A stretch of DNA of 64,000 nt from assembly GCA_002269645.1 (NCBI GenBank), contig NIVC01000825.1, forward strand, positions 186,001-250,000. The letters run 5' to 3'. The notes below the pieces were generated by a model that saw only the letters and a program-made list of their open reading frames with translations, had not been told where the DNA came from and did not search any database. The stretch is from Macrostomum lignano. Lineage: Eukaryota. Made by a program: the position numbers and the translations under genes. Positions 16,636 to 64,000 of this stretch are shown piece after piece. How positions within the stretch are numbered: position 1 is the stretch's first letter; each line of letters starts with the position of its first letter.

Positions 16636-17931
16636 CTAACAGTTTGACGGCACGGGGACCCGGCCATCCGTTCTGCCACCACTATGCCGGTACTCAAACT
16701 CGCACATGCCTCGGCCGTTGACGATTCGACCGTCTGGTAGCTTGCAGCGAATCTTGGCCAGCACACAATAGAGTCTGGCCTCCCAGTTCCAGCCGCAGTA
16801 ATAGGATGGTGCGTCAACAGAGGTCACCTCGAGTTCGTAGCGTTGATTTCCTTGAACTGTGAGATCCACTTGATAAGTCTTGGGCGGTGGCTCGGTCTCG
16901 CCAATTTGCCAGAGCGACCGGGAGCTGGCGGTCGCGGCCAGCTTCTTCTTGTCAGGAGTGATGACGAAGCCGGTGATGAGGTGAGTCATCAGCACTGGCA
17001 GGCAGACAAGGTGGAAGGCAATGCAAGTTGAGTCTTCCAGTACGAAGTATTGCAAGATGTATCGATGAAAGTCGTTCCATTTTCTGTACAGCCCGTAGCT
17101 TCTGTCGCGCATGCTGTCCAAGTTCAGCTGCCACTGACCGACGTCTTGCACTTTGATCTCGCCGGTTAGCCGGCCGAACTGCTCATAGTGCGTCTGGTGC
17201 GCCTCCCGCAGCCGCTGGAAGAAGTCGCCGCTCCATGGCTCCCGCGCGATGGCCTCGCAGGTCGGGCCGGCGTCCATATCGGTGTCGAAGTCGAAGCAGG
17301 GCGTCTCCGCCCGCCAGGTGAGGTCGAAGCTGACCTGCCGCACCTGGCGACCGCGGCGCTGGCGCAGCTCTCCGTTGAACATGACGCGCCACTCTTTCAT
17401 TGGTGTAACAGTCTGGTAGGCGAGCCCGCCAGCGTTCCAGCTGCTGTCGTCCACCGCGTCAACGTCGGTGGCGGGACCCCAAGGCCACTCCAGTACGTCG
17501 CCGTCCAGAATAGTCTCGGGTGGCCGGATCACCATGATGCATTCGGCCTTGAGATGATGCCGCCGCTGGATGCCGGCGCCGAAGTACCAGCCGTCGCGGC
17601 TGTAGCCGTTGAAATAGGCGGCGTCGATGGCCTGCGGATGCGCGCTCAGTGGCTGGACTCGCTCCATGTCTGCCTCGCTAGCGTGGCTTTTTCTGCCGTA
17701 GCCGCTGCCGCCTCCGTGTCCACCACCAGCGTCGCCACCGTCGCCGCCGCTGTCGCCGCGAAGCTTCCGCAGCCGCAGTAGGACGTAGAAAGCGGCGAAC
17801 TTGATGGGGTAGAACGGGCCAGGCTGGCTGTACACGCTGAGGTACTTGCCAGCGCTGTGACGGCGGAGCGCCAGTATCAGTGTTGCTATGGCAACGACAG
17901 CTCCTGAGCCGATGTACAGTACGACTGACAT
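16636..17931 (-). CDS. Intronless 431-aa uncharacterised protein with N-terminal membrane anchor; resembles an invertebrate family also found as the N-terminal region of 'PEP-synthase-like' proteins
   Basis: Clean GC-rich ORF with hydrophobic N-terminus and motifs YSQPG, DAAYFNG, FDFDTDM, AIAREPWS..F, HQTHYEQFG, RDRSYG, GWNWEAR, EFEYR. The family assignment is from memory, not from a search. Confidence 0.85.
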   Translation of the reverse strand: MSVVLYIGSGAVVAIATLILALRRHSAGKYLSVYSQPGPFYPIKFAAFYVLLRLRKLRGDSGGDGGDAGGGHGGGSGYGRKSHASEADMERVQPLSAHPQAIDAAYFNGYSRDGWYFGAGIQRRHHLKAECIMVIRPPETILDGDVLEWPWGPATDVDAVDDSSWNAGGLAYQTVTPMKEWRVMFNGELRQRRGRQVRQVSFDLTWRAETPCFDFDTDMDAGPTCEAIAREPWSGDFFQRLREAHQTHYEQFGRLTGEIKVQDVGQWQLNLDSMRDRSYGLYRKWNDFHRYILQYFVLEDSTCIAFHLVCLPVLMTHLITGFVITPDKKKLAATASSRSLWQIGETEPPPKTYQVDLTVQGNQRYELEVTSVDAPSYYCGWNWEARLYCVLAKIRCKLPDGRIVNGRGMCEFEYRHSGGRTDGRVPVPSNC

Positions 17932-27751: not shown

Positions 27752-30613
27752 ATGCGCCTGTTTGTGCTCTCCCTGTGCTGCCTGCAGCTGGCCCTGCTCG
27801 CCTCCGCGGTCAAGGAGGACGAGGAGCTCTTCGACTGGCAGGAGTTCCACCTGACCATCGAGAACCCGCAGGCCGCTGCCACTGTTCGTCATTATGTGAA
27901 CGCTCGCGACGTAAGCAATGAACGTTATTTTCGAAGCGCGTAACTTGGCGGACAGCGAGTCTGAGGGTAGTTTCCTCTTAGACCTGAAACACCGAGTCTG
28001 GTGGTGCCACCATGGGTTTTCACTTCAGACGGCAGCCTCCACCATCATTCAGAATACTGCTACCTCTAGAGGCATTAGGCATGCACTTAACCTTCACGAT
28101 CTTCTATCAAAGTACTACCTAAAGCCATAAAGGACTAGGAATTTAGTATTCACGATGTTTAAACAAGTACTATCTCTTTTCAGTCGTTGGCAATCGGCCT
28201 AAGACGCAAGTTAAAAAAACATGCTACTTTTAGTCCACAACCCTTACCATCTGGTCATTTAAATCTATTTGTTGTCCGATAATCAGGAAGGTCCATAATC
28301 TTTACTATAAAAATTAGATTTTGCTGTCCCACAGTTCCTCGTCGCTAACGAGAACCACTTGGGCTACACCGAGAGTGTAGTCGTGCCGCCACAAGAGGTC
28401 ATCGGATTCATGGCCTTCCTCGGCAATCTGCAAGTGAAGTACGAGATTCTGGAGAAGGATGTCGGCGGGTAAGGCAACTTGTTTTGCAGAAATACTGATA
28501 AACAAATTGGTCTACCAACCAAATCAAATGAACCAACTGAATCCTACTTCAGCATGCTGCTGAGGGCCAGGCTGGAAAACAAGCTGAGCGCCAGGGCCTT
28601 CAACAATGACCCGTCGACTTACTTCGCTCAGAGCTCTGAGGTAAGGTTCTCTCTATAACCTGTGAAACGGTTTTTCAATGAAATAATCTATCGATTCTCT
28701 ACATACTTTGATGAATGCATCCGGTTGCAGATCTACACCTGGATGGAGGGCCTGGTCAGTCAGAACAGCGGCGTTGCTTCTCTCGTTTCCATCGGTAGGT
28801 CTTACGAAGGCCGTAATCTTCGCGTGCTGCGGCTGAATATGAACGGCGGCTCCAACAAGCCTGTGATCTTCATTGACGCGGCCATCCATGCCAGGGAGTG
28901 GCTGGCCCCCGCCACTCTTAACTACATCGTCAAGCAGCTTATCAACGACTACAAGGCCGGAAACAGCGAGGTCCGGACGCTAATGAACAAGTTTGACTGG
29001 CACTTCATGCCGGTGGTCAACCCCGACGGCTATGACTACACATTCCGATCCAGCTCGGTTAGTTCGAAGATAAAGCTAGCTAAAACGTACTCAACAGGTG
29101 ATAATTGAACTTTTTTTTCAAATGTTCTCCCAGACCAGGTACTGGCGCAAGACCCGCAAGCCGTACAGATTCGCCTACGGCGCCGATCCCAACCGCAACT
29201 TTGACTTCATGTTCGGCGGACCCGGAACCAGCAACAACCCGTCCAGCGACATTTACCACGGCCCGAATGCATTCTCTGAGCCGGAGACCAAGGCTTTGAG
29301 CGACTACCTGACCGGCATTAGAAACCAGCTGCAGCGGGGCATGTACATCAGCTTCCACACCTACGGACAGTGGTGGCTGACCCCGCCTGGCTACACCCGA
29401 TCTCTGCCTTCCGACCACACCGAAATGGTGAGCACTTGATTCGTGAGCACCTGACTAAATTCATTACCTAATTAAAATTGCTAAAAAACGCATTGAAACT
29501 CTACACGAACAGATGAGAGTTGGAAACGCTGCGGCAGCGGCCATCCGTGCGGTTAGCGGACAAAACTTCCGCGTTGGTCAGCCTGCCAACGTCGGCCTGT
29601 GTAAGTTTTGGGAATTGAACCAGAATAGGGATAGTTAGTTTGAAGTCAGAGCTGATGGCATCCAGGGTGTAGAGCAGTTGTTAATTTGGGTTTAACATCC
29701 GTAAAGTATATAGAATTCAGCAGTTGTTAATTTGGCTTTGTAGCGGAGGGGTTTGTAGGCCCTGGTGTGCCGAAAATCAAGGCAACTGGCGACCCCGCAG
29801 CCAGCGAGGAGCAGCCAGTAGTTATGCCCATTTCGCTCACCCTCAAGCTCGTGCTCTCGCACGGAGATGCACACAGGCTGTACAAATTTCTCTTCGTCAG
29901 TCGTGCGCACTCTGTCCAAGGAAAAGACCCAAATAGACGCGAATTGTTCGACACACTCTAAGGCAGATTTCTGTCCCGTTGAAAACGAGAGTTAAACTTG
30001 AAAGTAAATAAACGAAAAGTAACTTTTGTTGGTTAATTTACCGTATTTTAACTTTTGAAAAGGCGAATTTACGTTAGTCAACCACACTCACTTTGTAGGT
30101 TAATTTCGGTTAACAAGCTCGTGAATTAACGTAAATTTACCCTCCTTAAAGCTATAAAGTATCGTCAACAACAAACAGCAACAACAAAGTGAAACCTTAA
30201 ATAACGTTTATTTACATAAAATGACGTTAATCAACCTTCAGGCTATTGTTTAATTACCCCCCCCCCCTCGTTAATTAATTATATTAACGTATATTAACCC
30301 TCGTTTTCAACGGGCTTGCGCTCTCAAGAAATCGACTTCGTGTACTTAGATGAGAGAGACGCCTTTCTAAGCCAGAGCTTCGTGCACTTTAAGCTTCAGT
30401 CTCTCTTCAACCGCGTCTTTTCCAGACGAGGCCGCTGGCGGCAGCTACGACTGGGTGAAGTACCGCCTGGGCGTCAAGTACTCCTTCACGCCGGAGCTGC
30501 GGCCGTACTACAACGGCTCCCTGAGCGGTTTCTCGCCCAGCGCCAGAGAGATCCCGAATAGCGGCAAGGAGATCTACCAGGCTGTCAAGGCCGTGGTTAA
30601 GGAGATCATGTGA
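27752..30613 (+). CDS. Secreted zinc carboxypeptidase, M14A family (pre-pro-enzyme, 425 aa, 7 exons)
   Basis: Exons 27752-27910, 28335-28468, 28553-28640, 28731-29057, 29134-29427, 29513-29600, 30426-30613, all GT-AG and phase-consistent. Signal peptide, propeptide, HAREW (H69/E72), WRKTR, DPNRNF, SFHTY (H196), Y248, ELRP (E270). AATAAA at 30726. Confidence 0.96.
29975..30314. mobile_element. MITE in carboxypeptidase intron 6
   Basis: TIR CCCGTTGAAAACGAG[A/G]GTTAA (20/21 match); AT-rich interior; no clear TSD. Confidence 0.75.
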
Positions 30614-32599: not shown

Positions 32600-33830
32600 T
32601 GCCTTTCAGGGACAACGGGGAAAGAAGATCATCGCGGGATCTCGCTGATTTCTCTTGTAACAGTTTGCTGCTTCTTGCTACTCCAGCAACTCGGTCACTC
32701 TGATAAGTTTGAAAATATATCCAGTCGTAGAGCGTCGGTCGTTCTGATATCCAGTCCAGTAGGCATAAAAAAAGCCAGTTAGATTTTTATTGTTATTATT
32801 GTTTATTGATCCAATCGATCATTTTTCTAAACTGAAAGCTGAGACAGGACTTCTGCAGCGGCCCAATAACCACTGAGGACGTTGTGCTGTTCGCTCGGAA
32901 AACACCAGGCGGCAAGGCGCTCGGCCCCGACGAAGTCCCGGTCGAAGCGTTGCGGCTCCGCTGTGTGGCCTCCCAGGTCACAGGCGTCATGAACCGCGTG
33001 CTCGCCGGCGCCCCAGCCCCTACCGAATGGACCATCGGGCACATCGCGCCGATCCCGAAGAAAGCAGGGACATCGCGGAAAGAAGACCACCGTGGAATCT
33101 CGCTGATGTCTTGCATCGCGAAGCTCTTCAACCGGCTGCTGCTCGATCGCCTGCAGTCGGCGCTGGACTCGTACCTGCGGTACGAGCAGAACGGATTCCG
33201 GCTGCAACGCGGTACAGTGACACAGATCCTCGCACTCCGTTGTGTCGTCGAGGAGGTGCGCATCCGCCAGTCTACGCTGATCTTTGTCTTCGTTGACTTT
33301 CGAAAGGCGTTAGACTCAGAGTTGAAAGCCGTGCTTCCCTTCCTACCGGGTCCCACAGCAGCCAACCGTCGCTTCATATCGCTATATTGCGACACTCGAG
33401 CTACTGTGGTCACGGCGGAAGACCTGTTTGACACTTTATCAGAAGTTCTGCAGGGCGACACGCTGGCACCGTTCCTCTTCATGGTGCTGCTGGACTGGGT
33501 GCTTCGGACTGCACTCTCCTTGGCGCAGATGCAGACGCATCGGTGAAAAGCGTCTGAGCGTGCTTGGTTACTCAGACGACCTCGCCCTCTTGTTATCCTC
33601 GTCCGTTGAAGGCTCCCAGCGCCAGACCGACAGGCTGGTCGAGTTGGCATCGAGCATCGGTCTAATTGTCAACACGCTGAAGACCTAGGTGCTGAGTGTG
33701 CCGACCGACATCCCAGCGGACCTGACGTGCCGCGGCACAGATGGGCAGACAACCAGGCTCGCACGCTGCCAGCGGTTCACCTACCTCGGCGGTCTGGTGC
33801 CCCACGTGGGGGAAGACCTCCGGCGGCCCA
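32600..33830 (+). pseudogene. Decayed non-LTR retrotransposon (LINE, RTE/RTEX-like) reverse transcriptase
   Basis: GKALGPDEVP, PIPKK..EDHRGISL, EQNGFR, FVDFRKALDS, LQGDTLAPFLF, YSDDLALL, FTYLG. Internal deletions, a frameshift and stops. A second KEDHRGISL fragment lies at about 32600-32670. Confidence 0.9.
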
Positions 33831-35680: not shown

Positions 35681-35965
35681 TTTGAGAAGTGACTCAAAAA
35701 CCAGATTCTGCTGCTCCGTGCAATAATTCCAAAGCGATATGAATCTACTAATCCCTCAGATTGGTGTATTGACTCGAGAGACTTCTATGCACACGCACCT
35801 GCTTTCCGCAGTCGTGAGGATATATCTCTATTTGCCTACAAAAGCCCCACCACCTGCAACACCTTGCAGGGGCCAACTGTTCCGATCAGTAAATACCGGT
35901 TGACTCGCGCAGAAACTTGCAGAGCTCCGCTTCCAAAGTTGCTAAAGGCTGTATTCGAGTTAGGC

Positions 35966-38900
35966 ATGCCGACACAGTCCAAGACGAAGACACTGACAGC
36001 AGTGCTTCACGCCTATCTGGCCGAAACTACGGCCCACGGCTTGCCAAGGATATCGAGCTCCGATCGGCCAATCTACCTCAAACTGATGTGGCTCTCCAGC
36101 TTCCTCGGCCTGCTAGTCTGGTTCGGCATCACATTTAGCGACGCCGTGACCAAACTGCTCAGTGCTAAACGAGACACGGCTATCTACGCGTTCGAGGTTC
36201 CTTTCCGATTCCCTGACCTGTACGTCTGCGGCAGCAACCCGGTGTCCGGCAGCCGCTCTGTCGGCCTCTCCGCCGTCCAAGCCGATGCCCTGCGCCGCCA
36301 GCTGGCGCCCACGCTAGCCACGCTGAACAACCTGACTGGCCTGACCCCCGTAGACCTGCTGAAGTACGTCGTCAATTCGTTGCCTTTCAACTTGGCCGCC
36401 GACTTGCTGGGGCACAGCCTCAGCCAGATGATCGCCTTCGCCTCCATCGAGGGCGACGTCAGCGGTACGATTCGAGATAACCAGACTGGCCGGCTGCAGT
36501 TCTCCAACTTCTACCATCCCGCCTACCTGCGCTGCGCCCGGCTCGGCCTCGACTCGGCCGCTGCAGCTCGGCTTCGCCAGCCCGACGCCTACCTGCACTT
36601 GGCGCTGACCGTGGACTCGCAGCTGCTCAGCTACACGGTCGACTCCAACCAGGTGTACATTCCACTGAGCGTGCTCGGCCGAATCCACAAAGCCTACCCG
36701 GCCGAATGGAGCCTGGATCTCGGCTGGAACGTCTTTGTTGAGAGCGGCCTGCGGCTGTTCCTAGTCGAGCCGGGCACTTATCCGACACCTTGGTCCACTT
36801 CCCTGTTGATTAGGTCGGGCACAATGGCCGAGGTTCGAATCACTATGCAACAGGTGTCTTACCTGGAGAGCCAGTTCGCTGGACAGTGCATGCCGAACTC
36901 TAGGCAGAGCCGGGTGCAGTTTGTTAATCCTTATGATGATTCCCTGTACGATTATAATTGCTCGGATGCTTGCTGCTATTATACAGGTGAGTCGCTTGTC
37001 TGTGATTATCTGCAATGTCTGCAATACCTGAGTGCACCTGTGATTACCAAATGGGTGATTATCTGATGAGTGATTATCTGGTGAGTGATTATCTGGTGAG
37101 TGATTATCGGATGAGTGATTATCTGGTGAGTGATTATCTGATGAGTGATTATCTGATGAGTGATTATCTGGTGAGTGATTATCTGGTGAGTGATTATCTG
37201 ATGAGTGATTATCTGGTGAGTGATTATCTGGTGAGTGATTATCTGGTGAGTGATTATCTGATGAGTGATTATCTGGTGAGTGATTATCTGGTGAGTGATT
37301 ATCTGGTGAGTGATTATCTGATGAGTGATTATCTGGTGAGTGATTATCTGGTGAGTGATTATCTGGTGAGTGATTATCTGATGAGTGATTATCTGGTGAG
37401 TGATTATCTGATGAGTGATTATCTGGTGAGTGATTATCTGGTGAGTGATTATCTGATGAGTGATTATCTGGTGAGTGATTATCTGGTGAGTGATTATCTG
37501 GTGAGTGATTATCTGATGAGTGATTATCTGGTGAGTGATTATCTGGTGAGTGATTATCTGATGAGTGATTATCTGGTGAGTGATTATCTGATGAGTGATT
37601 ATCTGGTGAGTGATTATCTGGTGAGTGATTATCTGATGAGTGATTATCTGGTGAGTGATTATCTGGTGAGTGATTATCTGGTGAGTGATTATCTGATGAG
37701 TGATTATCTGGTGAGTGATTATCTGGTGAGTGATTATCTGATGAGTGATTATCTGGTGAGTGATTATCTGGTGAGTGATTATCTGGTGAGTGATTATCTG
37801 ATGAGTGATTATCTGGTGAGTGATTATCTGGTGAGTGATTATCTGATGAGTGATTATCTGGTGAGTGATTATCTGGTGAGTGATTATCTGGTGAGTGATT
37901 ATCTGGTGAGTGATTATCTGGTGAGTGATTATCTGATGAGTGATTATCTGGTGAGTGATTATCTGGTGAGTGATTATCAGATGAGTGATTATCTGATGAG
38001 TGATTATCTGGTGAGTGATTATCTGGTGAGTGATTATCGGATGAGTGATATCAGTAATGTCTCGAAACCTGAGCAGGTTAGGTAATATCAATCACTTCAT
38101 CAAAAACTATTTCAGAGTTTGCCCGAAGAATGCAGAGCCTGCTGAACTGCACAGACAAGGCGGTGCCCCGTACGGCAGCTTTCAGACACCTGCGAAGCTG
38201 CCACAACGCCACAGGGCTGACTGTTGATCAGCTGAACAACCTGACGGCCAGGAAATTGGCAAACAGGGACCTTTTGAAGGCCATTTCAACTCAAGTGTCT
38301 GATGCGTGCTCGAATCAGTCTCCGTGCACTTCTCTGAGCTATACGGTGACTTTGGGTTATCTGTATTGCGCTTAGCAGAAAAAGCTTAGTAGAGCTCTAG
38401 ATAGTTACAGGGTAAAGGCTTTCTCCCATAGAGAGCTGCTGACAGCTTCCTGCGGGTCATAAAGAACAGTCTAAATCAAACTAATTGTCTTTGATCGCAC
38501 ACTAAAACCATTAGATTTACGAGCATGCCAATATTAACCTAACAGATCGACTGGTCCGTTTCCGATTGGCCTCTCGCCGCCTTCACCGACATCATGATGG
38601 AGATGATTCGCTCTCGCATAGACAGCCTGACCGACAAGCCGTTCTTCCAGATCTACTACGCCGAGAAAGACGCGGCCGGCTCCAACGCCAGCTCGCAACA
38701 GCTTGAAAAGTTGGCGAGCCTGATAAGCAGCCAAGTTTCTCTGGTCAGGCTGAGCAGTCGGCACTCTAATAGCGATCAGGTACGGAGTCTTATACTAAAG
38801 TTCCGGTCAGCACCAACCTTTCTAGCTGGCTCTGATCTCGAAACTAGCCAGCGCCCCTCGGCCTTATTTACAACCACCCCACTCCTTGCCCCACCCCTCA

Positions 38901-40176
38901 GACTTATTTCCAAACACCTCACTCCCTGCCCCATCCCCTGCCTTATTTACAACCACCTCACTCCCTGCCCCATCCCCTGCCTAATTTACAATCACCTCAC
39001 TCCCTGCACCCACCCATCTGCCTTATTTACAACCACCTCACTCCCTGCACCCACCCATCTGCCTTATTTACAACCACCTCACTCCCTGCCCCATCCCCTG
39101 CCTTATTTACAACCACTCACTCCCTGCCCCATCCCCTGCCTTATTTACAACCACTCACTCCCTGCCCCATCCCCTGCCTTATTTACAACCACTCACTCCC
39201 TGCCCCATCCCCTGCCTTATTTACAACCACTCACTCCCTGCCCCATCCCCTGCCTTATTTACAACCACCTCACTCCCTGCCCCATCCCCTGCCTTATTTA
39301 CAACCACCTCACTCCCTGCACCCACCCATCTGCCTTATTTACAACCACCTCACTCCCTGCACCCACCCAATCTGCCTTATTTACAACCACCTCACTCCCT
39401 GCACCCACCCATCTGCCTTATTTACAACCACCTCACTCCCTGCACCCACCCAATCTGCCTTATTTACAACCACCTCACTCCCTGCCCCCACCCAATCTGC
39501 CTTATTTACAACCACCTCACTCCCTGCCCCCACCCATCTGCCTTATTTACAACCACCTCACTCCCTGCCCCATCCCCTGCCTTATTTACAACCACTCACT
39601 CCCTGCCCCATCCCCTGCCTTATTTACAACCACTCACTCCCTGCCCCATCCCCTGCCTTATTTACAACCACTCACTCCCTGCCCCATCCCCTGCCTTATT
39701 TACAACCACTCACTCCCTGCCCCATCCCCTGCCTTATTTAGAACCACTCACTCCCTGCCCCATCCCCTGCCTTATTTACAACCACCTCACTCCCTGCCCT
39801 CACCCATCTGCCTTATTTACAACCACTCACTCCCTGCCCCATCCCCTGCCTTATTTACAACCACCTCACTCCCTGCCCTCACCCATCTGCCTTATTTACA
39901 ACTACCTCACTGCTTGCCGTTTTTTATCCTGTTTATTGATTTCTAAGCATTTTTTTGAACAGAAAACTTCAGTTCACCACTCGCATTTTCTAAACCGATC
40001 AGCTGCGAGTCACTCTGGCCTACACCTTCAACAATTTGTTTGCGGAGACCGGCGGCCTACTGGGACTCTTCCTGGGCTGTTCTCTGCTGACTCTGCTTGA
40101 GCTGGTCGAATTGCTGCACAATTGTATTATTAACTGCTTTTGCAGGCGAAAACGGGTTGAAGCGAAGCCCACGTGA
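35966..40176 (+). CDS. DEG/ENaC family amiloride-sensitive channel subunit (about 552 aa, 4 exons)
   Basis: Exons 35966-36986, 38116-38345, 38546-38779, 40003-40176, phase-consistent. TTAHGLPRI (HG motif), TM1, FPDLYVCGSNP, PCTSLSYTIDWSVSDWP, TM2 FAETGGLLGLFLGCSLLTLLELVE (GxS filter). Confidence 0.9.
37040..38049. repeat. 15-bp tandem array ([G/A]TGAGTGATTATCTG)n, 67 units, in ENaC intron 1
   Basis: Period 15 with binary G/A variants. Confidence 0.97.
38850..39910. repeat. 38-43-bp C-rich tandem array (CCTTATTTACAACCACTCACTCCCTGCCCCATCCCCTG-like) in ENaC intron 3
   Basis: Variable period; makes ORF 38594-39946 read through the intron. Confidence 0.95.
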
Positions 40177-40925: not shown

Positions 40926-41321
40926 CCAATGGCAGGCTTGGATGGAGATGGGGACCAAGCAGGAGACTGTATTTAGCTGCTACAAGCTAGGCCAGAGAGA
41001 AAACCGCTGCATACACTTTCTTTTTGAAGCAGCGCTTTTTCAACGCTTTAAAAGAACCTCAGTTCGCTTTTTGCTTGTTAAGTTGGCTTGTCACACAGGA
41101 CCCCCCCCCCCAAGTCTCGATCTGCAACATGTCGCCAAGTGCAAGGTTTTGCTTTCTATTTTGTCTCATCGCTCTGGGTGAGTTTTGCGTTCTTTTTTTG
41201 CATCTTTAAAATATTTTTTTAAACTTATACTGTTCCCAAATTATATAATCTGTGAATGATTTCTGAGTTAATTAGGACTTTTATTTGAGTTTTCTCAGAG
41301 TAGCTTTCCCAATTACATGTA

Positions 41322-41745
41322 GATCTGACCCGATTAGATATCAGATCTAACCCGATTAGATATCAGATCTGACCCGATTAGATATCAGACCTAACCCGAT
41401 TAGATATCAGATCTGACCCGATTAGATATCAGATCTGACCCGATTAGATATCAGATCTGACCCGATTAGATATCAGATCTGACCCGATTAGATATCAGAT
41501 CTGACCCGATTAGATATCAGATCTGACCCGATTAGATATCAGATCTGACCCGATTAGATATCAGATCTGACCCGATTAGATATCAGATCTGACCCGATTA
41601 GATATCAGATCTGACCCGATTAGATATCAGATCTGACCCGATTAGATATCAGATCTGACCCGATTAGATATCAGATCTGACCCGATTAGATATCAGATCT
41701 GACCCGATTAGATATCAGATCTGACCCGATTAGATATCAGATCTA
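41322..41745. repeat. 22-bp tandem array (GATCTGACCCGATTAGATATCA)n, about 19 copies
   Basis: Period 22, near-perfect. Confidence 0.96.
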
Positions 41746-42152
41746 TCCAACTTGCCTACAACCAAAGATCCCTTACGAGAACAGCACCAGCCCAAAGTGC
41801 CATTGGGAGTAGAAAGTGAAATTCACTTCCTGTATAAGTGTTCTTGGAAATTAATTTAATAGTGCTCCCTGTGATAATTGTCTAAGCAGTAAATCTCGAA
41901 TAAAGGTTCAATTTTTTATAAACCCTACTGCAGAGAGCAAAGAATTTTACGTAATGACTCACGAGAAAAGAGACAAAATGGAAATTCTAAATTTTCTCGC
42001 TTCATGTAATACCGGAAAATTGTTTGAATATTCTGTTTGTGTGCGATACTTATTTCAACGTTTGTGACGTCAAAAATTTTTTTATCGATTAGCATTTTTC
42101 TTTTGTTTCCTTCTGCCCTTCTTTCTTTATGTACAGGGAAATATTATAACAT

Positions 42153-45100
42153 ATGAAAATCAGCACCCTCTCGGTAAGGGAACTTAGTAGTGCTAATTAT
42201 TAAATTAAATTATTATTCTTTTAATATAAAGATATAAAAAATTATGAACAAATAGTAACTATAAAAATTAATTAAGTAAGAAATTAAATAAAAATCAGTG
42301 AAGTATTAACCAAAAATTAACTAAGAAATTGACTAAAAAATTTAATTAGGATTAATGAAATTAGCAAAATTAGGAATTAACTTAGAGCTAACTAATAATT
42401 ATTTTAAAAATTAACTTAAATAAGATTAAATAAGATTAGGATTAGAAACTATGATTAAAAGAAAGAGTATATAAGATTTAAATTCAAAACAAGCCAAAAC
42501 AAGTCTTTCTACATGGTGTGTTTTTTACACTCGGCCAGCCGAAGGGACTTAAATAAACAAATCTAGGAAAGGCAGAATTAGGAGCCGATCGATGAGTACA
42601 GTTCCGGAGTCCATGATCAGGCATTGACAGAAATGGAAGCAAGTCGATTACCCGTTTTTTTATGATCTCGGATTCTCGGTCGGTGGGTGGCTGGGTGGAC
42701 AGCCATGCAGAAAACGATCTGCGAGACGTGGGCGGAGCGGCTTCACGAAGGAGGCGGGTCCGCGGCGACACTGTATCCGTTTCCGTCTCGTTCTCATTCT
42801 CTGAGACACACAGCAATCGCTAAACAGGAGGGGATTAAATGCATTGAAGAGAATTATTGGAGGCGCGGTAATGAGACTGCCTGCGGTCCTCGCTTTCCGA
42901 TTTCCCCCCGTCCCAACATCAGTCGAGTTGCAGCTATGGTTTGATTTTATCGTGTCTCTCAATTCATCTTAAGTGCCAATTTTATCTCGGCTTCGAGAGA
43001 CTGACTGCCTGCTCATCTGCTGCTCTGATGCTCGAGTCGATCAGATAGAGGTTTTATCTTAGCTTACAGAGTGTTCTTGCAATTAATTAATATATAGTAC
43101 CAAGGTTCTAAGAGGCTTGTAGCCTGGGGGGGGGGGGTTGTAGACCAGTGGTTAGTGCGTCGGACTGAAAGGTCGGGGGTTCGACTCTCAATCTGATCGG
43201 AACAATTTGTGTCCTTGAGCAGGAATCAGGAGTCAAGAGTCAGCAGTCAGCAGTCAGCAGTCAGCAGTCAGCAGTCAGTAGTCAGCAGTCAGCAGTCAGC
43301 AGTCAGCAGTCAGCAGTCAGCAGTCAGTAGTCAGCAGTCAGCAGTCAGCAGTCAGCAGTCAGCAGTCAGGAGTCAGCAGTCAGCAGTCAGCAGTCAGCAG
43401 TCAGCAGTCAGCAGTCAGCAGTCAGCAGTCAGCAGTCAGCAGTCAGCAGTCAGCAGTCAGCAGTCAGGAGCCTGGTGCCCGGAAAGCCGTCAGAATAGAC
43501 AGCTGGGGTCAGCAGCTAGTGTGTCAGGAAAAACCAAACATGTGTCAGATGCTGTGCATAATTTCTGCCCAACAGCAGAGGCCAAGCCGCTCGCATTTGA
43601 AGTGTCCCCAGCAATTTCAATCTATAGAATAAAAGCCAATTTCTCCCAGAGTAGGATCAAGCACTCGGGGTGCCGATTCAATGGAATTCTGCTTTTAGTA
43701 GCGGCATCAGCAGCCGGTATAATGGCCGAGGGAAATGCGGAACACGCAGGCGATTAGGTGCGAATTGGAGACGCGCGCTTCAGGAGGCGGTAATAATTTC
43801 TGCCGCCGCCCCCCCCCCTTTTCTCTTCCTCTCCTTCGCGGGAGCATCGATTTTTTGATCCATGAATAATTGAATAATTCTCGGGGAATTTGCTGCAATG
43901 CATGCATTCAGGATGAGGTGTCAGAATGCAAGATGAGAAGCAAGAGAGGGCGGGGTCGCGGCATCGCCATACCTGAATGAATTGAATTCACAAGAAAAAA
44001 GTCACGCTCTCAAAGTATTTCTTTCCTGTGCTTTTGAGTTCCAACGGGACTGGCGGCTGAAAGCGCTGCTCAAATTCAATTTCAGTTAGCCTTGGCTCCG
44101 CTGCCCCGCCACGGGACTTCGACGACATCGAGGAGCACGACGCGCTCTAGTGAGTACAGGCTCTGAATTATTTATCCTAGCAACTAATTTGAATTGTCAG
44201 CTCAACTTAATCTCCATGCCCCCTCGTGCAGCCGACAATTCTGCTGCTTTTGTCGATTAAAAGCTGTCCTGCAACAGTTGGGGAGAAGTGGGACTCGGGG
44301 TTTTATATGGTGGAACTGCTCTGGAAATAGGGGTGATTCCATTAGAAGAAGCACTTTTTTAAATGTGGGATTTTTCACGAGTGGGAAACTTTGAATATGG
44401 GATACTTCAAGGGTGGGATACTTATGAACATGGGATATCTCAAGAATGGGATACTTATGAACATGGGATATTTCAAGAATGGGACACTTTTGAATATGGG
44501 ATATTTCAAGAATGGGACACTTATGAACATGGGATATCTCAAGAATGGGATACTTATGAACATGGGATATCTCAAGAATAGGGGACTTATGAACATGGGA
44601 TATCTCAAGAATGGGAGACTTATGAATATGGGATATCTCAAGAATGGGACACTTTTGAATATGGGATATTTCAAGAATGGGACACTTATGAACATGGGAT
44701 ATCTCAAGAATGGGATACTTATGAACATGGGATATCTCAAGAATGGGATACTTATGAACATGGGATATCTCAAGAATGGGAGACTTATGAATATGGGATA
44801 TCTCAAGAATGGGGGACTTATGAACATGGGATATCTCAAGAATGGGATACTTATGAACATGGGATATCTCAAGAATGGGAGACTTATGAATATGGGATAT
44901 CTCAAGAATGGGGGACTTATGAATATGGGATATCTCAAGAATGGGATACTTATGAATATGGGATATCTCAAGAATGGGGGACTTATGAATATGGGACATC
45001 TAAAGAATGGGAGTCTTTTGAACATGGGATATTTCATTAATGGAGGACTCTGAATATAGGAAATTTCTACAACACAGAACCTGACTTTCGGGAATTACTC

Positions 45101-46209
45101 GCAGGTAAGGGAACGAATCCTAGTAAACAGGTTCGAGTCGAGTTCTTTGCTCAGGTAATCTTCAGCACGCAATTAGCTCCAAGCATAAGCAGCATGCTCG
45201 CGTAAAATTTCACCTTAATAACGAGATAAAATATAGACATCTAGCGAGCCACCAAAGCAAGTTTAGAGTCGCAAGCCTCAGTCTAAACAGGTTGAACTCT
45301 CTCTCCACCTCTTGTAACATCACCCGCTACTCCGAGCAGAGAGCACCCCCCATACACAAAGCGAGTCAGTAAGCTCCGGGTTATGATTTCCCACGGGAAT
45401 CTGGTGTGATCCATTAGCCTCTCTGTGACTTGGAGGCTGCACACTCCGTCTAATTGTGGGCCAGCAACTTTGGAGGCTGCAAAACAACACATTTTAATGC
45501 GACATCGAAATATCATAATCCGCTTTTAGGAGTTATCATATAATTATGGGGGCGACTTCCGCATGACACTCTGCAATGGTGCTTCGCTGCCATTCTGTCT
45601 GCCTATTTTCTTTTGTACTTTTCAGTGTTTGGAGAAAGCCTTGCATTCAGATTTGCAACTGTCTTATCTTAGTTTTTCCTAAATATTTGTCTCATCATCA
45701 CTCTGCCCCATCATCACTCTGCCCCATCATCACTCTGCCCCTTCATCACTCTGCCCCATCATCACTCTGCCCCATCATCACTCTGCCCCTTCATCACTCT
45801 GCCCCTTCATCACTCTGCCCCTTCATCACTCTGCCCCTTCATCACTCTGCCCCATCATCACTCTGCCCCATCATCACTCTGCCCCTTCATCACTCTGCCC
45901 CATCATCACTCTGCCCCATCATCACTCTGCCCCTTCATCACTCTTCCCCTTCATCACTCTGCCCCTTCATCACAACCTCACTCGTGAGCCCGCTCACAAC
46001 CTCACTCGTGAACCCGCTCACAACCTCACTTGTGAACCCGCTCACAACCTCCCTCGTGAACCCGCTCACCCACCAGCAAGCGCGGCTGGCCAGTCCGTTA
46101 CGTCACAGGCGGCGGGGTGATGGAGATCAAGCGAGGCGACTCCAAGCATCTGTTCGACGCCCTGATGGGGCTGAAGCGGAGCAGGGAGTGGATGCTGCAC
46201 AGGCAATGA
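42153..46209 (+). CDS. Candidate neuropeptide/peptide-hormone precursor (about 94 aa)
   Basis: Exons 42153-42173 MKISTLS (tentative), 43650-43716, 44086-44149, 46077-46209 splice in phase to a signal-peptide-like SRIKHSGCRFNGILLLVAASAAVSLGSA followed by APPRDFDDIEEHDALY-KR-GWPVRYVTGGGVMEI-KR-GDSKHLFDALMGL-KR-SREWMLHRQ-stop. Confidence 0.7.
43135..43225 (+). mobile_element. tRNA-derived SINE head, possibly CORE-type, interrupted by a 7-bp array
   Basis: A-box TAGACCAGTGG (43141), B-box GGTTCGACTC (43178), then TGTGTCCTTGAGCAG resembling the CORE-domain start. Confidence 0.65.
43237..43468. repeat. (AGTCAGC)n 7-bp array
   Basis: Direct reading. Confidence 0.96.
44390..45050. repeat. 33-bp tandem array (TTATGAACATGGGATATCTCAAGAATGGGATAC)n, about 20 copies
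   Basis: Period 33; intronic to the candidate neuropeptide gene. Confidence 0.96.
45695..46070. repeat. 16-bp (CATCACTCTGCCCC[A/T]T)n array followed by a 24-bp (CACAACCTCACTCGTGAACCCGCT)n array
   Basis: Two adjacent arrays ending a few nt before the 46076 acceptor. Confidence 0.93.
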
Positions 46210-48369
46210 AGCGACCTTAAGAGAATTTCGAATTCGCAAGAACCAAGCAAGTCTCACCCCCTAATTTGCGACTAAACTGAACGAAAAAACCACACCAAAA
46301 CTTGGCGGAATGTTTTCGCTATTTTGCAAAACAAACCAAAATTCTTAATTACGCAGCCCTGTTATGACAAATAAAACGATCATCTTTGCGGTTTGAATCG
46401 CAGCAAAATTTTGACTTCTTTTGGACCTTTTCTTAATGAAGAAATTTGGCCAATTCACTATTCTGCCTTCAAGTAGGGTACACGTTCTACCTGTGAATGC
46501 ACGTTAATAACGTGCAGGCTGGTGAAGAGAATCTGCATTGCTTGGGAGAAATCATCAATTCAGAAAAGGTATAATAGATCATAGAAAACCTGGGATTCCT
46601 AGTTGAAAATTTTAGCATTGTTCTGACTCCATAACCATCTCTGATTGACAGGCTGCAATGCATTCTTCCCTATAGTTTCGAGAGCATTTGCGAATTTAGA
46701 ATCCTCTTCTACTCAATCTGCTGAGTGCACAGGATGCTTCACCCTGGAAGACTGCTCGGTAAGCGCTTTTAACGCAGGTAGATGGGTGAGAATCTATAGA
46801 ATTGTTCAAGTTTAAAGGCCCACTTCTCAATTGCAATTGCATTGCTGGTTGCCATGCAGTTCCCTCCTCCGACTCCGTCTGTCTACTCGAATTTACATGC
46901 AGCTAGAAACAAAAAATGAACAAAAGGTGCGTAATTTTTCTTCTAGAGGTAGTTTAACTTTCTTCCCGGAACTGTTGGAACAATTCAATTTTCTTTTTTA
47001 GTCTCTCATTCATGCTCTCTGATGCGTCTTCTGCCCCGTCGGGAAATTTACCAAAGGAGAAAGTCTGCATGCAGGCAGGCCCGGAAGAGTTTAATGGGGC
47101 TTCGTCCCAAGCAAATATTTGCTTCCAGGCTCCTAAACTATACTTTTGGATACCAGCGCCTTTTGATGCAGCTTGACATTTTTTTTTGGGGGGGGGGTGG
47201 GAGGCGGGCGTTAGTCGAGAAAACCGGAGAAGTCATACCGGATCAAGGATAGCAACTAATGCCAAGCTATTTATAGGTGAAATCCGCTAATTGCCGCCAT
47301 AAAAATTTTGTGTCAACTCCAATTGGCGAACTGCGGCAGATTAACAAAATGAAATTAATTGGATAGTCTATAGATAGTCGGGGACAAATTGGTTAAAACA
47401 AATATTCAATTGGCTGTGTGATCTGGATTATAATAGTTTAAAATGACATATCATTAAACTGTGCTGAATTTGAGTCCAAGACAGCTAGAGCAAGAGATAC
47501 TTGGGGTCATGGAAGACCTATGGATTATTGTTGAGAAGGAATATTGTTGCCTATCAAAACCCGTTCTCAGATCGGCCGCTGCTTTTAAGCAATTCAATCA
47601 GTTGCTTTCAAGCGGAAACTAGCTAGTGCAGTCTTTCAATGCATCTATTTTGAATGCTTGAAACAATAGCATAGCTATTTACTAGCTTTTGGGGAAATTG
47701 ACGTTGAGCACTTTATTTTAATTTTTTAAGATAACTCAAATCTAAGCCGTACAGCAGTCGCGCGATTGTGTTAATTGTATTAAAAGAGAGATGCTTTACT
47801 AAGTCAAGCTCACAGAATCGCTTTGCGTTCGAGTCTAAAATCTGTGCACCAGTGTCCATTGTCTCGATGTGCAGTGCAATAAGCAAGCCGACACAGTCGA
47901 ACGGCAACAAACAGTTACTGACTAAAACAAATGCAGGCATAGAGCATACGGATTTCTGCAAACTGCTATTTTTAGAATTTTTACCTGTTGAATCCACCAT
48001 TCTCTTATGGAGTAGCTCCTAAAGGAAGAAGCAAACAAAAAAGATTGACTCGTCAGGCATAGTGTTGAGCTAAAGACTCCTAGCAAACATTTACACAAAC
48101 GAACACTGCTAACACTTACTGTATGCATCCGTCAGAAGCAAAAAAGTTTACTTGTTTCGATCAACACAGCTGAGACCAATTGAATTTGAAGCTTAGGATT
48201 TGCGTAGCTTAGCTTGGAAGTTTAGGATTTGCTAGCCATGGACTTAAAACCCGACTACCATAGGTAAATAAATTGTTCTCTAACTATGTCAAGTGACACA
48301 TGGAAAACAGATAAATAAAAATGGCTCATTTATGTGCATGTAAATTCTAAATACGCTAAATGTTCCGTG

Positions 48370-51283: not shown

Positions 51284-51733
51284 ATGAAGTGCGTAATTCT
51301 GCTGTCTGTAGTTGCCTTCTCTCTGGCCGGCGTCGCCATTGGCTCCCTGATCGGCGGCAAGAGCCCTCTGACAGAGGCAGACGTTAAATCGCCTGAGTTC
51401 CGCGGCGCCTTGGACATGGCTACGCTGGAGATGAACCGGCTGAGCAGCCAGCCCAGATTCTACGCAGTGCTCAACTTCATGAGCGGCACCAAACAGGTGG
51501 TTGCCGGTGTCTTCTACGAATTCAGCGTCGTTTTGCGCGCCACCGAGTGCGAGAGCCACAAGGAGCAGAACCTGGAGAATTTGGCCAAGTGCGCCCCAGT
51601 GAACTTGCCAGGCGCCTCCGAGTTCCGCTGCAACTTCAAGGTTCTCTACCAGCCGTGGTCCAGCAACTCTGCGTACCGGGTTATGAGCGAGCCGTCCTGC
51701 GTGTCACCCCGGGAGGTGCCCTTCGCCGGCTAA
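51284..51733 (+). CDS. Secreted type-2 cystatin (149 aa)
   Basis: Signal peptide, N-terminal Gly (LIGG), QVVAG, PW motif and four Cys; AATAAA near 51877. Confidence 0.96.
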   Translation: MKCVILLSVVAFSLAGVAIGSLIGGKSPLTEADVKSPEFRGALDMATLEMNRLSSQPRFYAVLNFMSGTKQVVAGVFYEFSVVLRATECESHKEQNLENLAKCAPVNLPGASEFRCNFKVLYQPWSSNSAYRVMSEPSCVSPREVPFAG

Positions 51734-60864: not shown

Positions 60865-62760
60865 TGTAGCATTAATCAGCTAGTAGCGAGCACCATTTTG
60901 ACCATACAGAACCATACAGACCATACAGAACCATACAGACCATACAGAACCATACAGAACCATACAAACCATACAGAACCATACAGACCATACAGAACCA
61001 TACAGACCATACAGAACCATACAGAACCATACAGATTTTGACCATTTTGACCATTAGAATATATTCTCAAGCTGTTTCTCGTTTACTGTCTCTAAAATTA
61101 AATAAAGCCGAGGCGAGCCGAGCCGAGCCGAGAGTTTACAACCTTTCTTTCTCACTTACGCCAAAGTTAATTCCACTGCGCTTTGGTTCACTCGCTACAA
61201 AGTGGTAGCAGAGCGTATGGTATGGAGGACACACAGCAGCAGCCGTTAGCGCCCCAAGCTGGAGCCCTGGCGCAACCAGTACAAGAGGCCTTCGTGCAAC
61301 GCATCGCTATCAAGCCTCCCGCCTTCTACCGGAAGTTGCCTGAGATCTGGTTCCGGCAACTGGAATCGCAGTTCACTCTAGCTGGAATCACCCACGCTGC
61401 AACCAAGTTCCATCATACGTTAGCAGCCCTGCCTGAGGACGTTGCCTGCTCGATCGACCTAGGCACAGAGGACTACGCCTCGCTTAAAACATCGGTGCTA
61501 GAAGCTTTGCGCGCCAACCGGCACCAAAGAATCGAAGAGGCCCTCGCCGAGGTGGAGCTCGGGGATCGCCGCCCATCTCAGTTGGTAACCGACATCAAGC
61601 GGCCATTCAGTGAAGTAGGCTTACAAGTCGATGACAGCATCATCAAGTCTCGACTCCTAACTGCACTGCCCACCCACATCCGCTCCGCCTTGGTCGGTCA
61701 CGAACAGGCGGAGCTGGACGCGTTTGCGAAGATCGCCGACAGCATGCTGGCTGTCGCCGGTTGCACCACCCCGTTCGCCTCTGTAAACCGCACCTCTGCC
61801 ACCGGCCAAGAGCACCCGAGGAGCAACGCTGGTTCTTTTCGTAGCAGGAAGCCCGACGACTCGAGCTCCAACCGGAACTCACGCCGACGACCCAAGATCT
61901 GTAACGGTCATCTCTACTACGCGGCCGATGCTCGCACGTGCCGACCATGGTGCCAGTGGCCAGGCTCGAAACCGCCGACACTGCTTGCCAGCCGTCAGCC
62001 CACTCCGGCTCAGTCCCGGGCGTCAAGCCAAGCCAGGTGTCAAACCAGTCGGTCACGTGCATCGGCCGAGCCGCGACCCGTCAAAGGCCACCACGCTGCT
62101 TCTTCGTTGCCAAGTCCTTCGTACGCCCGTTTCGTTCATCGTTGACACCGGCGCCGAACGGTCGCTTCTTCCTTTGCAGTTTGTTCCTCAAAATCTACTC
62201 GGCATTCACCACATCCGCACTTCAGCCTATAATCCGAGAGCTAACGGTATCATCAAACGTGCACACCGGACGCTAAAGATCGGTTTGAAGGCGCGCGGCA
62301 AAAACTGGCTGCAGCAGCTGCCCGTCGTGCTCCTGGGCATGCGCATTTTCCCAGACGAGTCAGGTGCCTCACCGTTCTCCGTTGTTACGGGTGAGCAACC
62401 GCTGGTCCCACCGGTCGTCACGACACGTCTGCGCTCAAGGAGCTCTCGACTAGTCTACACCAGCTTTTTTCCCATACCGGCAGCCGAGAACGCGCGAGAT
62501 AGCCGTGCATTTGCCAGCCGCGCTGAGTTCGTGCACACACGTCTGGCTACGGTTGGACCGTGTGCGACGACCCCTGGAGGCTCCTTACCAAGGCCCGTAC
62601 GCTGTGCTAGACAGGCACGACACCACAATAACACCCCAGATCAACGGCAAGCCTACCGTAGTGTCTATCGATCGTGTAAAGCCCGCCACCCTGCCAACAG
62701 CCCATCAAGAGCAGCCAGCAGCTACACCGGCCCCGCCAAGCGACGCTCCGTAGGCCACCT
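60865..62760 (+). mobile_element. Internally deleted Ty3/Gypsy element: 5' LTR, PBS, gag, protease and integrase fragments
   Basis: LTR TGTAGC..GCTACA (60865-61199). PBS TGGTAGCAGAGC (61203-61214), complementary to the initiator tRNA-Met 3' end. gag from ATG 61222 (IKPPAF..PEIWFRQLESQF). FIVDTGAERSLLP, TSAYNPRANG, LEAPYQGPY, VSIDRVKP. No RT and no 3' LTR seen. Confidence 0.92.
60898..61036. repeat. 9/10-bp array (ACCATACAG[A])n inside the Gypsy LTR
   Basis: Absent from the paralogous LTR at 50123. Confidence 0.93.
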
Positions 62761-63457
62761 ATAGTTACTACGATCTGTCTCGTCAAAATCTTTATAACAG
62801 ATTCAAAAGATGAAACTATTTTATAGCATGGCAACCTTAATCTAAAGACAATTAGAATATTTCTGTCCAATATTCAATATGGATTGAATTCACGTATAGG
62901 ATATCTGTATCGAGGAATTTATTTGGAGTTCCGAAAAACTTCCAATTCACCATGTTCATTCTTCCAATAAAAATACATAATCTTGTAACTAATTATAGCA
63001 TATTCTATTCTATATAACTGCTATTTTGCAGTTATTGCAGTTATTACTTACCCTTGCTGGAATCCTGAGTTTTCAAAATAAAAAACTACAAAGCGTCCCG
63101 CAAATTGTATTGAAATCAGTAGCTCAGGATCTCAGACTCTACATATCCGAGATCCCCTCAAGCTGCAGCCTGTACCTGCTTCTGGTTTGGGCCAAATACT
63201 ATATGGCTCTGGGACTGTGGCGCTTTGGTTTTATGTCTATGTCAAGGTTGATCGGTGCGAATTTGCTGACAATAAAGTGCATAGATTTTTTTCCAAAAGA
63301 GTTGAACCATAGAGGCAGAAATAAAATGAGAAAGGCATGCATCATTTCATATAATAGATATCGATGCATGCAATATACCTTTTTACGTTCTATTTGATAA
63401 AAACTGCAACCAATTTGGCCACGGCTCAGCCTGACCATAGACATAGAATTTTCCATA

Positions 63458-64000
63458 GACAGCCACCGCTAGCGGCAACCAATTTGGTAAAAACTGCGAG
63501 CTATTTTGCCAGCTTGAAGATAGCAGCTGCTCTGATGGCGAATCGTGGGCCGTACCAAAAGATAAGTCAGCTGGATCGAGAGCGAATCGTGAGAGCGTAC
63601 AGGAGTGGCGACGACTGGGGAGAGCTTGGCAGAATGATGGGGATGAAGAAACCGACAGTGAGGAACATCGTGACCACGTATGAACGAACTGGTAGAGTTG
63701 GCACTCTGCCAAAAGGAGGAGTGAAGAGGATGGCGCTGACGGAGGCTATGGTGGACACCATTGTTCAATTCGTCGAAGGTCAACCTACTGCCTCTCACGC
63801 CTCTCAAGTGCCTGCGCTGGATCAACCATTCCCAGACGTACTTCAATCGGTGCTTGAATGCTGAGGACATAATGTTCTGACTTCGTGCATGTATTGTTAA
63901 CATTCTTTATCGTTATTGTTATGCTATTGAGCTGCTATCTTCAAGCTGGCAAAATAGCTCGCAGTTTTTACCAAATTGGTTGCCGCTAGCGGTGGCTGTC
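63458..64000 (+). mobile_element. Foldback/MITE-like derivative of a Tc1/IS630 transposon carrying the N-terminal HTH region
   Basis: Perfect 71-bp inverted arms at 63458-63528 and 63930-64000 (cut by the window edge). ORF from 63535 MANRGPYQKISQLDRERIVRAY..KPTVRNIVTTYERTGRV..PKGG resembles a paired-like HTH; no DDE domain. Confidence 0.75.

Follow-up and report, generated by a model that had tools for sequence, protein, structure and literature searches.

Does a small locus of the flatworm Macrostomum lignano encode the precursor of a secreted signalling peptide and, if so, which part of the precursor is the peptide? The locus lies in a stretch of 64,000 nucleotides, here called the window, which spans positions 186,001 to 250,000 of contig NIVC01000825.1 in the M. 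lignano assembly Mlig_3_7 (GCA_002269645.1). An earlier note, made from the letters of the window alone, had proposed that a hidden multi-exon prohormone-like gene occupies positions 42153-46209. The gene in question is Mlig028524.g3, a genuine, transcribed gene of three exons which encodes an 81-residue secreted precursor. We read it as a lineage-restricted putative precursor of a neuropeptide or peptide hormone, whose product would be the free 15-residue peptide GWPVRYVTGGGVMEI acting as a secreted signal, and assign this reading a probability of roughly 0.55.

A transcribed three-exon gene

Used as a query, the joined peptide of the earlier note retrieves the UniProt entry A0A1I8JHN8, an 81-residue 'Secreted protein' (89% identity, with 99% of the query covered), which is contained in the spliced product of the window gene. 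The cluster of this entry comprises PAA62076.1 and PAA79739.1 (BOX15_Mlig028524 g1 and g2) along with the partial, 121-residue PAA76414.1 (g3). The GenBank g3 locus of Mlig028524 is 100% identical to window positions 31009-56209, and the g3 gene range corresponds to 41009-46209 on the forward strand, the strand of all features of this gene given below. When searched against the window with tblastn, the 81-residue protein produces three 100% matches, namely 41129-41176 (residues 1-16, exon 1), 44085-44147 (residues 17-37, exon 2) and 46078-46206 (residues 39-81, exon 3). Splicing of 41009-41177 to 44086-44149 and 46077-46209 yields PAA76414.1 residue for residue. Genome-guided transcript assemblies are the sole basis of the GenBank annotation of Mlig_3_7: RNA-seq was assembled with StringTie/TACO, the de novo transcriptome was mapped in addition, and open reading frames (ORFs) were called by TransDecoder (PMC5730564). 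Hence, PAA76414.1 being transcript-derived, the junctions 41177/44086 and 44149/46077 from which it is translated rest on transcripts.

The gene opens with a 5' untranslated region (UTR) at 41009-41128, through which the 'partial' coding sequence of PAA76414.1, beginning at 41009, runs in frame. This TransDecoder start inside the 5' UTR, in conjunction with an in-frame TAG in the genome six codons 5' of 41009, indicates that the transcript starts near 41009. A putative core promoter read from the sequence at 40926-40976 would comprise a CCAAT motif (40926-40930) and a TATA-like TATTTAG (40970-40976), the latter lying 33-39 nucleotides 5' of the annotated transcript start; the spacing of both motifs would suit such a role. 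Coding exon 1 (41129-41177), which reads ATG TCG CCA ... GCT CTG G, encodes MSPSARFCFLFCLIAL and the first base of V17, covering most of the predicted signal peptide, and ends in phase 1 at a GTGAGT donor at 41178. Intron 1 (41178-44085, 2908 nucleotides) leads through a TTTCAG acceptor to exon 2 (44086-44149, 64 nucleotides), which completes the predicted signal peptide (VSLGSA) and encodes an acidic spacer APPRDFDDIEEHDAL and the first two bases of Y38. Exon 2 ends in phase 2, and its donor is again GTGAGT, the canonical form shared by both donors of the gene. Intron 2 (44150-46076, 1927 nucleotides) ends in the acceptor CCACCAG, and the coding part of exon 3 (46077-46209) runs through KR, GWPVRYVTGGGVMEI, KR, GDSKHLFDALMGL, KR and SREWMLHRQ to a TGA stop. 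A probable 3' UTR (46210-46395) contains AATAAA at 46370-46375, 160 nucleotides past the stop; the poly(A) site itself is predicted, as is an mRNA length of ~550 nucleotides.

The earlier note had placed exons 2 and 3 and the junction between them exactly, as confirmed by the splice sites and the tblastn matches, and the intron phases that it gave, 1 and then 2, hold in the true gene model. Its first exon was taken to end at 43716, or to start from an ATG at 42153, and to supply a signal-like segment, GILLLVAASAA. The frame is indeed open and hydrophobic before a GT at 43717 and would join exon 2 in phase 1. However, the frame lacks an ATG from the preceding stop up to 43716, its donor, GTATAA, is a weak one, and the segment (about 43640-43716) forms the 3' end of an ORF (43209-43757) that is mostly a translation of a (TCAGCAG)n microsatellite. 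The segment, the ATG at 42153 and an AT-rich stretch all lie inside intron 1. The transcript-based GenBank model and the homologous first exon of a paralogue (see below) favour 41129-41177 instead; the real signal peptide MSPSARFCFLFCLIALVSLGSA is encoded 2.5 kb further upstream, and a first exon joined at 43716/44086 has next to no likelihood.

The introns are filled with minisatellites, as the earlier note had described: intron 1 holds a 22-mer (x19) and a 7-mer (x35), whereas the arrays of intron 2 are a 33-mer (x21), a 16-mer (x18) and a 24-mer (x4). The GC content of exons 2 and 3 is 0.66 and 0.63 respectively, against 0.42-0.44 in the introns, and the description of these two exons as GC-rich holds. 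The 22-bp unit of intron 1, AGATCTGACCCGATTAGATATC (x19, 41321-41744), is partly palindromic, and the only Rfam match at the locus, MIR1513 on this array, is spurious and below threshold (25 bits, where the gathering score is 95). Intron 1 also contains a tRNA-like segment at ~43128-43200 with the box A/B-like motifs CCAGTGGTTAGTG and, further on, GGTTCGACTCT, preceded by a run of eleven Gs and followed by (TCAGCAG)x35 at 43226-43467. This combination suggests a tRNA-derived short interspersed element; neither ARAGORN, which reports no tRNA in the whole window, nor Rfam at E<=1 over the locus calls the segment.

The gene is uncharacterised rather than hidden. It was missed by a prokaryote-style ORF list, as the earlier note held, and is already public as an unnamed hypothetical or 'secreted' protein, being annotated three times in GenBank (Mlig028524 g1-g3) and present in UniProt. 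Two further copies of the locus, 94-98% identical to that of the window in exons and introns alike, retain the reading frame with S18G as the sole amino-acid change; at 94-98% identity throughout, the three copies are too close for a test of selection on exon versus intron divergence. The Mlig_3_7 assembly is substantially redundant (PMC5730564), and hidden polyploidy is reported for M. lignano in the literature. An exact-protein look-up of cDNA contigs for the 81-residue protein and for A0A1I8FFZ6 returned no match, and the gene identifiers, sought for expression data in the supplements of M. lignano papers, were not found there. A0A1I8FFZ6, which models a copy of the window gene with a frameshift and a 5' extension, carries the name 'FGE-sulfatase domain-containing protein'. 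A Pfam scan reproduces neither this name nor that of the paralogue entry A0A1I8H4U9 ('Promotilin'), and the automatic UniProt names of this prohormone-like family are unreliable.

The precursor and its conserved block

The N-terminus of the precursor, about residues 1-22, may be tentatively regarded as a signal peptide cleaved after GSA: the predicted segment MSPSARFCFLFCLIALVSLGSA, followed by A, combines a basic n-region with a hydrophobic core, for which 9-residue windows on the Kyte-Doolittle scale average up to 3.3, and its residues at positions -3/-1 (GSA before A) are small. The automatic UniProt name, 'Secreted protein', is weakly consistent with secretion. Downstream of it the three KR sites of the earlier note are present, at residues 39-40, 56-57 and 72-73, and the four fragments that it predicted, APPRDFDDIEEHDALY, GWPVRYVTGGGVMEI, GDSKHLFDALMGL and SREWMLHRQ, read as it had stated. 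The 15-mer GWPVRYVTGGGVMEI, encoded at 46084-46128, has a monoisotopic mass of 1619.81 Da and a charge of about 0 at pH 7. The precursor contains no Gly-dibasic amidation signal, and the 15-mer is predicted to be non-amidated.

A phmmer search of 1.84 billion representative proteins uncovered a single informative relative, which is an old paralogue within M. lignano itself (E 3e-4; Mlig025753 g1/g2 and Mlig002456 g1; UniProt A0A1I8H4U9 and A0A1I8HT75); the only other match besides the copies, a repetitive 1211-residue protein with E 1e-4, was judged spurious. The family in M. lignano comprises two genes, each in several near-identical copies. The true precursor of the paralogue has 103 residues (MSKYALLPVFCSLVIVLAVMDLVTALPASQEELDKRSGHEEADGRRSAVSRRGWPVRYMAGGGLMEIKRAAADAILSAESKRERLQRRLQELYEEKLRRLGQE). 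Its locus likewise has three exons, with one intron in phase 1 interrupting the predicted signal peptide and another in phase 2 lying just 5' of the dibasic site and GWPVRY, and its first exon is homologous to that of the window gene (MS...FC..L) and ends at the same phase-1 intron. The two genes are alike in exon structure, intron phases, predicted signal peptide and 15-mer. The paralogue differs in being longer, with the extra dibasic sites DKR and GRR, in a spacer unlike that of the window gene and in a longer, Arg/Glu-rich C-terminal helix. Its chromosomal neighbourhood is also different, with neither a DEG/ENaC gene nor a cystatin gene, the neighbours of the window gene described below, within 10 kb.

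The distribution of identity between the two proteins is uneven. The signal peptide (residues 1-22) is identical at 9 of 22 positions, the spacer (23-38) at 4 of 16 and the C-terminal part (58-81) at 5 of 24, so that 9 of the 40 residues of the mature protein outside the conserved block are shared. The block itself, (K/R)R-GWPVRY[VM][TA]GGG[VL]MEI-KR at residues 39-57, is identical at 15 of 19 positions, and the 15-mer alone at 11 of 15. It is the sole conserved block and maps to 46078-46134 (KR at 46078-46083, GWPVRYVTGGGVMEI at 46084-46128, KR at 46129-46134), with KR/RR and KR bracketing GWPVRY[VM][TA]GGG[VL]MEI in both paralogues. Four codon differences within it are synonymous (CGT/CGC, GGG/GGT, AAG/AAA and CGA/CGC), and these changes, taken with the concentration of identity in the block, point to selection on the peptide. 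The third KR is found in some copies of the paralogue only, others having SAESER for SAESKR. As this site and the other fragments have diverged, one peptide rather than four appears to be under constraint: of the four products that had been proposed, only GWPVRYVTGGGVMEI with its two flanking sites is conserved, and conservation does not extend to APPRDFDDIEEHDALY, GDSKHLFDALMGL, SREWMLHRQ or the third KR.

The same evidence bears on the alternative that the KR pairs are incidental and remain uncleaved, the product being a small secreted protein that stays whole, at about 59 residues. This could draw on the loss of the third KR from one set of paralogue copies and on the secondary structure that AlphaFold2 tentatively places in the 81-residue precursor, with residues 44-55, in the 15-mer, forming a hairpin and residues 60-80 a helix. 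The confidence of that model is low, however, with a predicted local distance difference test score (pLDDT) of 61 and a predicted template modelling score (pTM) of 0.26, and it shows no confident globular fold. The precursor contains no cysteines, everything outside the dibasic-flanked block has diverged, and the flanking sites stay KR/RR and KR despite nucleotide changes. On the whole, an uncleaved protein appears improbable.

Known peptide families and alternative roles

The gene appears to be prohormone-like in its predicted working and, judging from sequence comparisons, a member of no described family. Neither a word-indexed protein search nor a profile of the two paralogues run against 5.8 billion proteins, a scope that left out genomes and transcriptomes of other Macrostomum species, produced a homologue outside M. 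lignano. A degenerate DNA pattern of the 15-mer had no match in metagenome contigs, and PDB sequences yielded no match either. Pfam at E<=10 assigns no family to the 81-residue protein, and over both paralogue proteins it gives only a sub-threshold TMEM132_C match on the signal peptide. In this respect the earlier description of a small spliced gene for a signal-peptide-bearing precursor with dibasic sites and no assignable family is supported. Full-text literature searches found no match to the peptide strings or gene identifiers, and no catalogue of M. lignano neuropeptides.

A few resemblances speak for a diverged member of a known family, whether orcokinin/pedal peptide, tachykinin or motilin. 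The FDDIE of the window gene is similar to the FDEID of orcokinin, its FDDI recalling the FD.I motif of the orcokinin/pedal peptide family, and A0A1I8H4U9 bears the label 'Promotilin'. A further parallel is offered by the planarian PPP-1 peptides (KR.GAYYDPIGGGLL.KR), which lack amidation and have been identified by mass spectrometry (Collins et al. 2010, PMC2953531). They are KR-flanked peptides of 12-15 residues with GGG followed by hydrophobic residues, and the YYDPIGGGLL of Smed-PPP-1 can be set beside RYVTGGGVM of the window gene as an aromatic residue, GGG and two hydrophobic residues. Smed-PPP-1, however, has eight tandem copies against one in the window gene, a different spacing from Y to GGG and no equivalent of GWPVRY, and a profile comparison with hhalign gives the relationship a probability of 0.35%. 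The strings GWP, WPV, PVRY, KRGW and MEIK are absent from the prohormone supplements of Collins et al. (2010, PMC2953531), where only the loose GGGLL likeness of PPP-1 is seen.

The orcokinin and tachykinin resemblances raised in the earlier note lie in unconserved parts and do not withstand direct testing. Orcokinin/pedal peptides carry an N-terminal (N/x)FD(E/S)I motif, mostly in several tandem copies between dibasic sites, whereas the window gene has a single FDDI, located in the spacer behind the signal peptide and missing from both the paralogue and the conserved peptide. Tachykinins end in FxGLM or FxGxR ahead of a Gly and a basic residue that permit amidation. In FDALMGL-KR a Leu stands between Gly and KR, so that no FxGLM-amide could arise; the segment is unconserved, and no tachykinin match is obtained from Pfam at E<=10. 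Both the FDDIE and the FDALM segments are absent or unrecognisable in the paralogue. A PDF/cerebrin-like reading of HLFDALMGL, made by eye against the strings ELINSLLGL and ADALYNL, was rejected given the lack of an amidation signal and of conservation in the paralogue. Pfam at E<=10 likewise shows no motilin/ghrelin domain in the paralogue or in the 81-residue protein. None of the orcokinin/pedal peptide, tachykinin and motilin families offers a counterpart to the strictly conserved GWPVRY, and the single peptide copy is unlike a tandem array. Membership in any of these families is therefore very unlikely.

In its general organisation the precursor is comparable to the planarian prohormones catalogued by Collins et al. 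(2010, PMC2953531): it is a small pre-propeptide in which a predicted signal peptide and an acidic spacer are followed by a short conserved peptide between KR/RR sites. It also resembles invertebrate neuropeptide precursors at large in having neither cysteines nor a globular fold and in conserving only the candidate bioactive peptide between paralogues; it differs from them in its single copy and the missing amidation signal, and its neural expression and processing are putative. During prohormone processing, signal peptidase acts on the precursor, convertases of the PC2/PC1 type cut after KR or RR and enzymes of the carboxypeptidase E type trim the ends, and because of this established knowledge we infer free GWPVRYVTGGGVMEI as the product. 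The N-terminal signal peptide would direct the precursor to secretion, the dibasic sites would be cut by a prohormone convertase of the subtilisin-like kind, and a carboxypeptidase would trim the basic residues to leave the non-amidated 15-mer. Spacing or processing roles would fall to the acidic piece at the N-terminus and to the basic tail at the C-terminus, which is probably helical. The 15-mer would most likely act as an intercellular signal, either a neuropeptide or a peptide hormone, at some receptor.

The main rival, which we rate as unlikely in its own right, is a processed secreted product other than a neuropeptide, which furin-like convertases would cut and which an exocrine or reproductive gland would release in seminal fluid or in a secretion serving adhesion or defence. 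The signal peptide, the dibasic sites and the small size fit it equally, no known neuropeptide family matches, and restriction of a family to one lineage is common among genes of reproductive and secretory glands. The neutral charge of the 15-mer makes it unlike an antimicrobial peptide, however, and the retention of a short block with both of its flanking dibasic sites in otherwise diverged paralogues is a classic signature of a receptor-binding peptide.

Several considerations weigh against a signalling peptide. The precursor offers neither amidation nor a Gly-dibasic signal, in which the 15-mer is unlike typical flatworm neuropeptides, although the planarian PPP-1 peptides are likewise non-amidated. 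There is a single copy of the peptide per precursor, and an architecture of this kind can also occur in secreted gland products. Protein and metagenome searches found no orthologue outside M. lignano, and conservation rests on one within-species pair of paralogues. The designation of the 15-mer as a neuropeptide remains putative in expression site, peptide detection and receptor. That GWPVRY..GGG.MEI defines a genuine new neuropeptide family, leaving aside any link to a channel, is possible at somewhat short of even odds.

The neighbourhood of the gene and its significance

The earlier note had drawn attention to a DEG/ENaC channel gene about 2 kb upstream on the same strand. The gene and its strand are as described, and the distance is shorter: the stop codon lies about 0.83 kb 5' of the prohormone transcript start. 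It is a separate multi-exon gene at 35864-40176 (+), with a 5' exon at 35864-~37040 (ORF 35864-37066) that matches PF00858 positions 1-315 (E 2e-13), a last exon at ~40004-40176 that encodes transmembrane segment TM2 (GLFLGCSLLTLLE; PF00858 positions 419-455, E 6e-10), and a TGA stop at 40174-40176. TM2 and the selectivity-filter region (GLFLGCSLLTLLE) are intact, and the introns are filled with 15/45-mer and 38-mer minisatellites. No AG directly precedes 41009, and a trans-spliced downstream cistron is therefore not indicated. The GenBank-derived table of the locus lists the prohormone gene and a cystatin, with the DEG/ENaC gene not among them; the latter may be unannotated or very weakly expressed.

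The most far-reaching proposal for the locus would be that GWPVRY..GGG.MEI represents a new non-amidated family of flatworm neuropeptides, possibly folded as a hairpin, which forms a ligand-channel pair with the adjacent divergent DEG/ENaC protein and thereby constitutes a new peptide-gated channel system. No DEG/ENaC gene occurs within 10 kb on either side of the paralogue, which tells against the link, and the channel fragment has no relative among PDB sequences at E<=1e-3 that would group it with peptide-gated channels. The proposal as a whole deserves hardly any credence, and a functional link between peptide and channel is pure speculation.

Elsewhere in the window, an M14 zinc carboxypeptidase (PF00246) is split over at least two exons at 28662-29439 (+). 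A single-exon cystatin (PF00031) with a signal-like N-terminus is encoded at 51284-51733 (+), and in one of the extra locus copies it likewise follows the prohormone gene. A 431-residue intronless ORF at 16636-17931 (-) has no Pfam match. Mobile-element sequences are represented by a reverse transcriptase fragment (RVT_1) at 32884-33546 (+), a gag-like DUF7041 with another ORF (61928-62764) behind it at 61183-62764 (+), and, below threshold (29 bits against a cut-off of 43), a Sleeping-Beauty transposase helix-turn-helix domain at 63364-63864 (+). The density of minisatellites in the window is extreme, with 39 Tandem Repeats Finder rows of score >=150 and arrays of up to 1.8 kb, the long ones including a 32-mer (x56) at 11957-13734 and a 16-mer (x95) at 4761-6284. 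Many of the long ORFs in the six-frame list are spurious products of these arrays.

The locus changes no general concept and consists of an orphan prohormone-like gene that already stood, unnamed, in the public annotation. Macrostomum lignano is a transgenic flatworm model. If GWPVRYVTGGGVMEI is a true signalling peptide, it would represent a lineage-restricted, non-amidated family invisible to homology searches, and the two genes and a mass of 1619.81 Da would provide a concrete target for peptidomics, RNA interference and receptor de-orphanisation.

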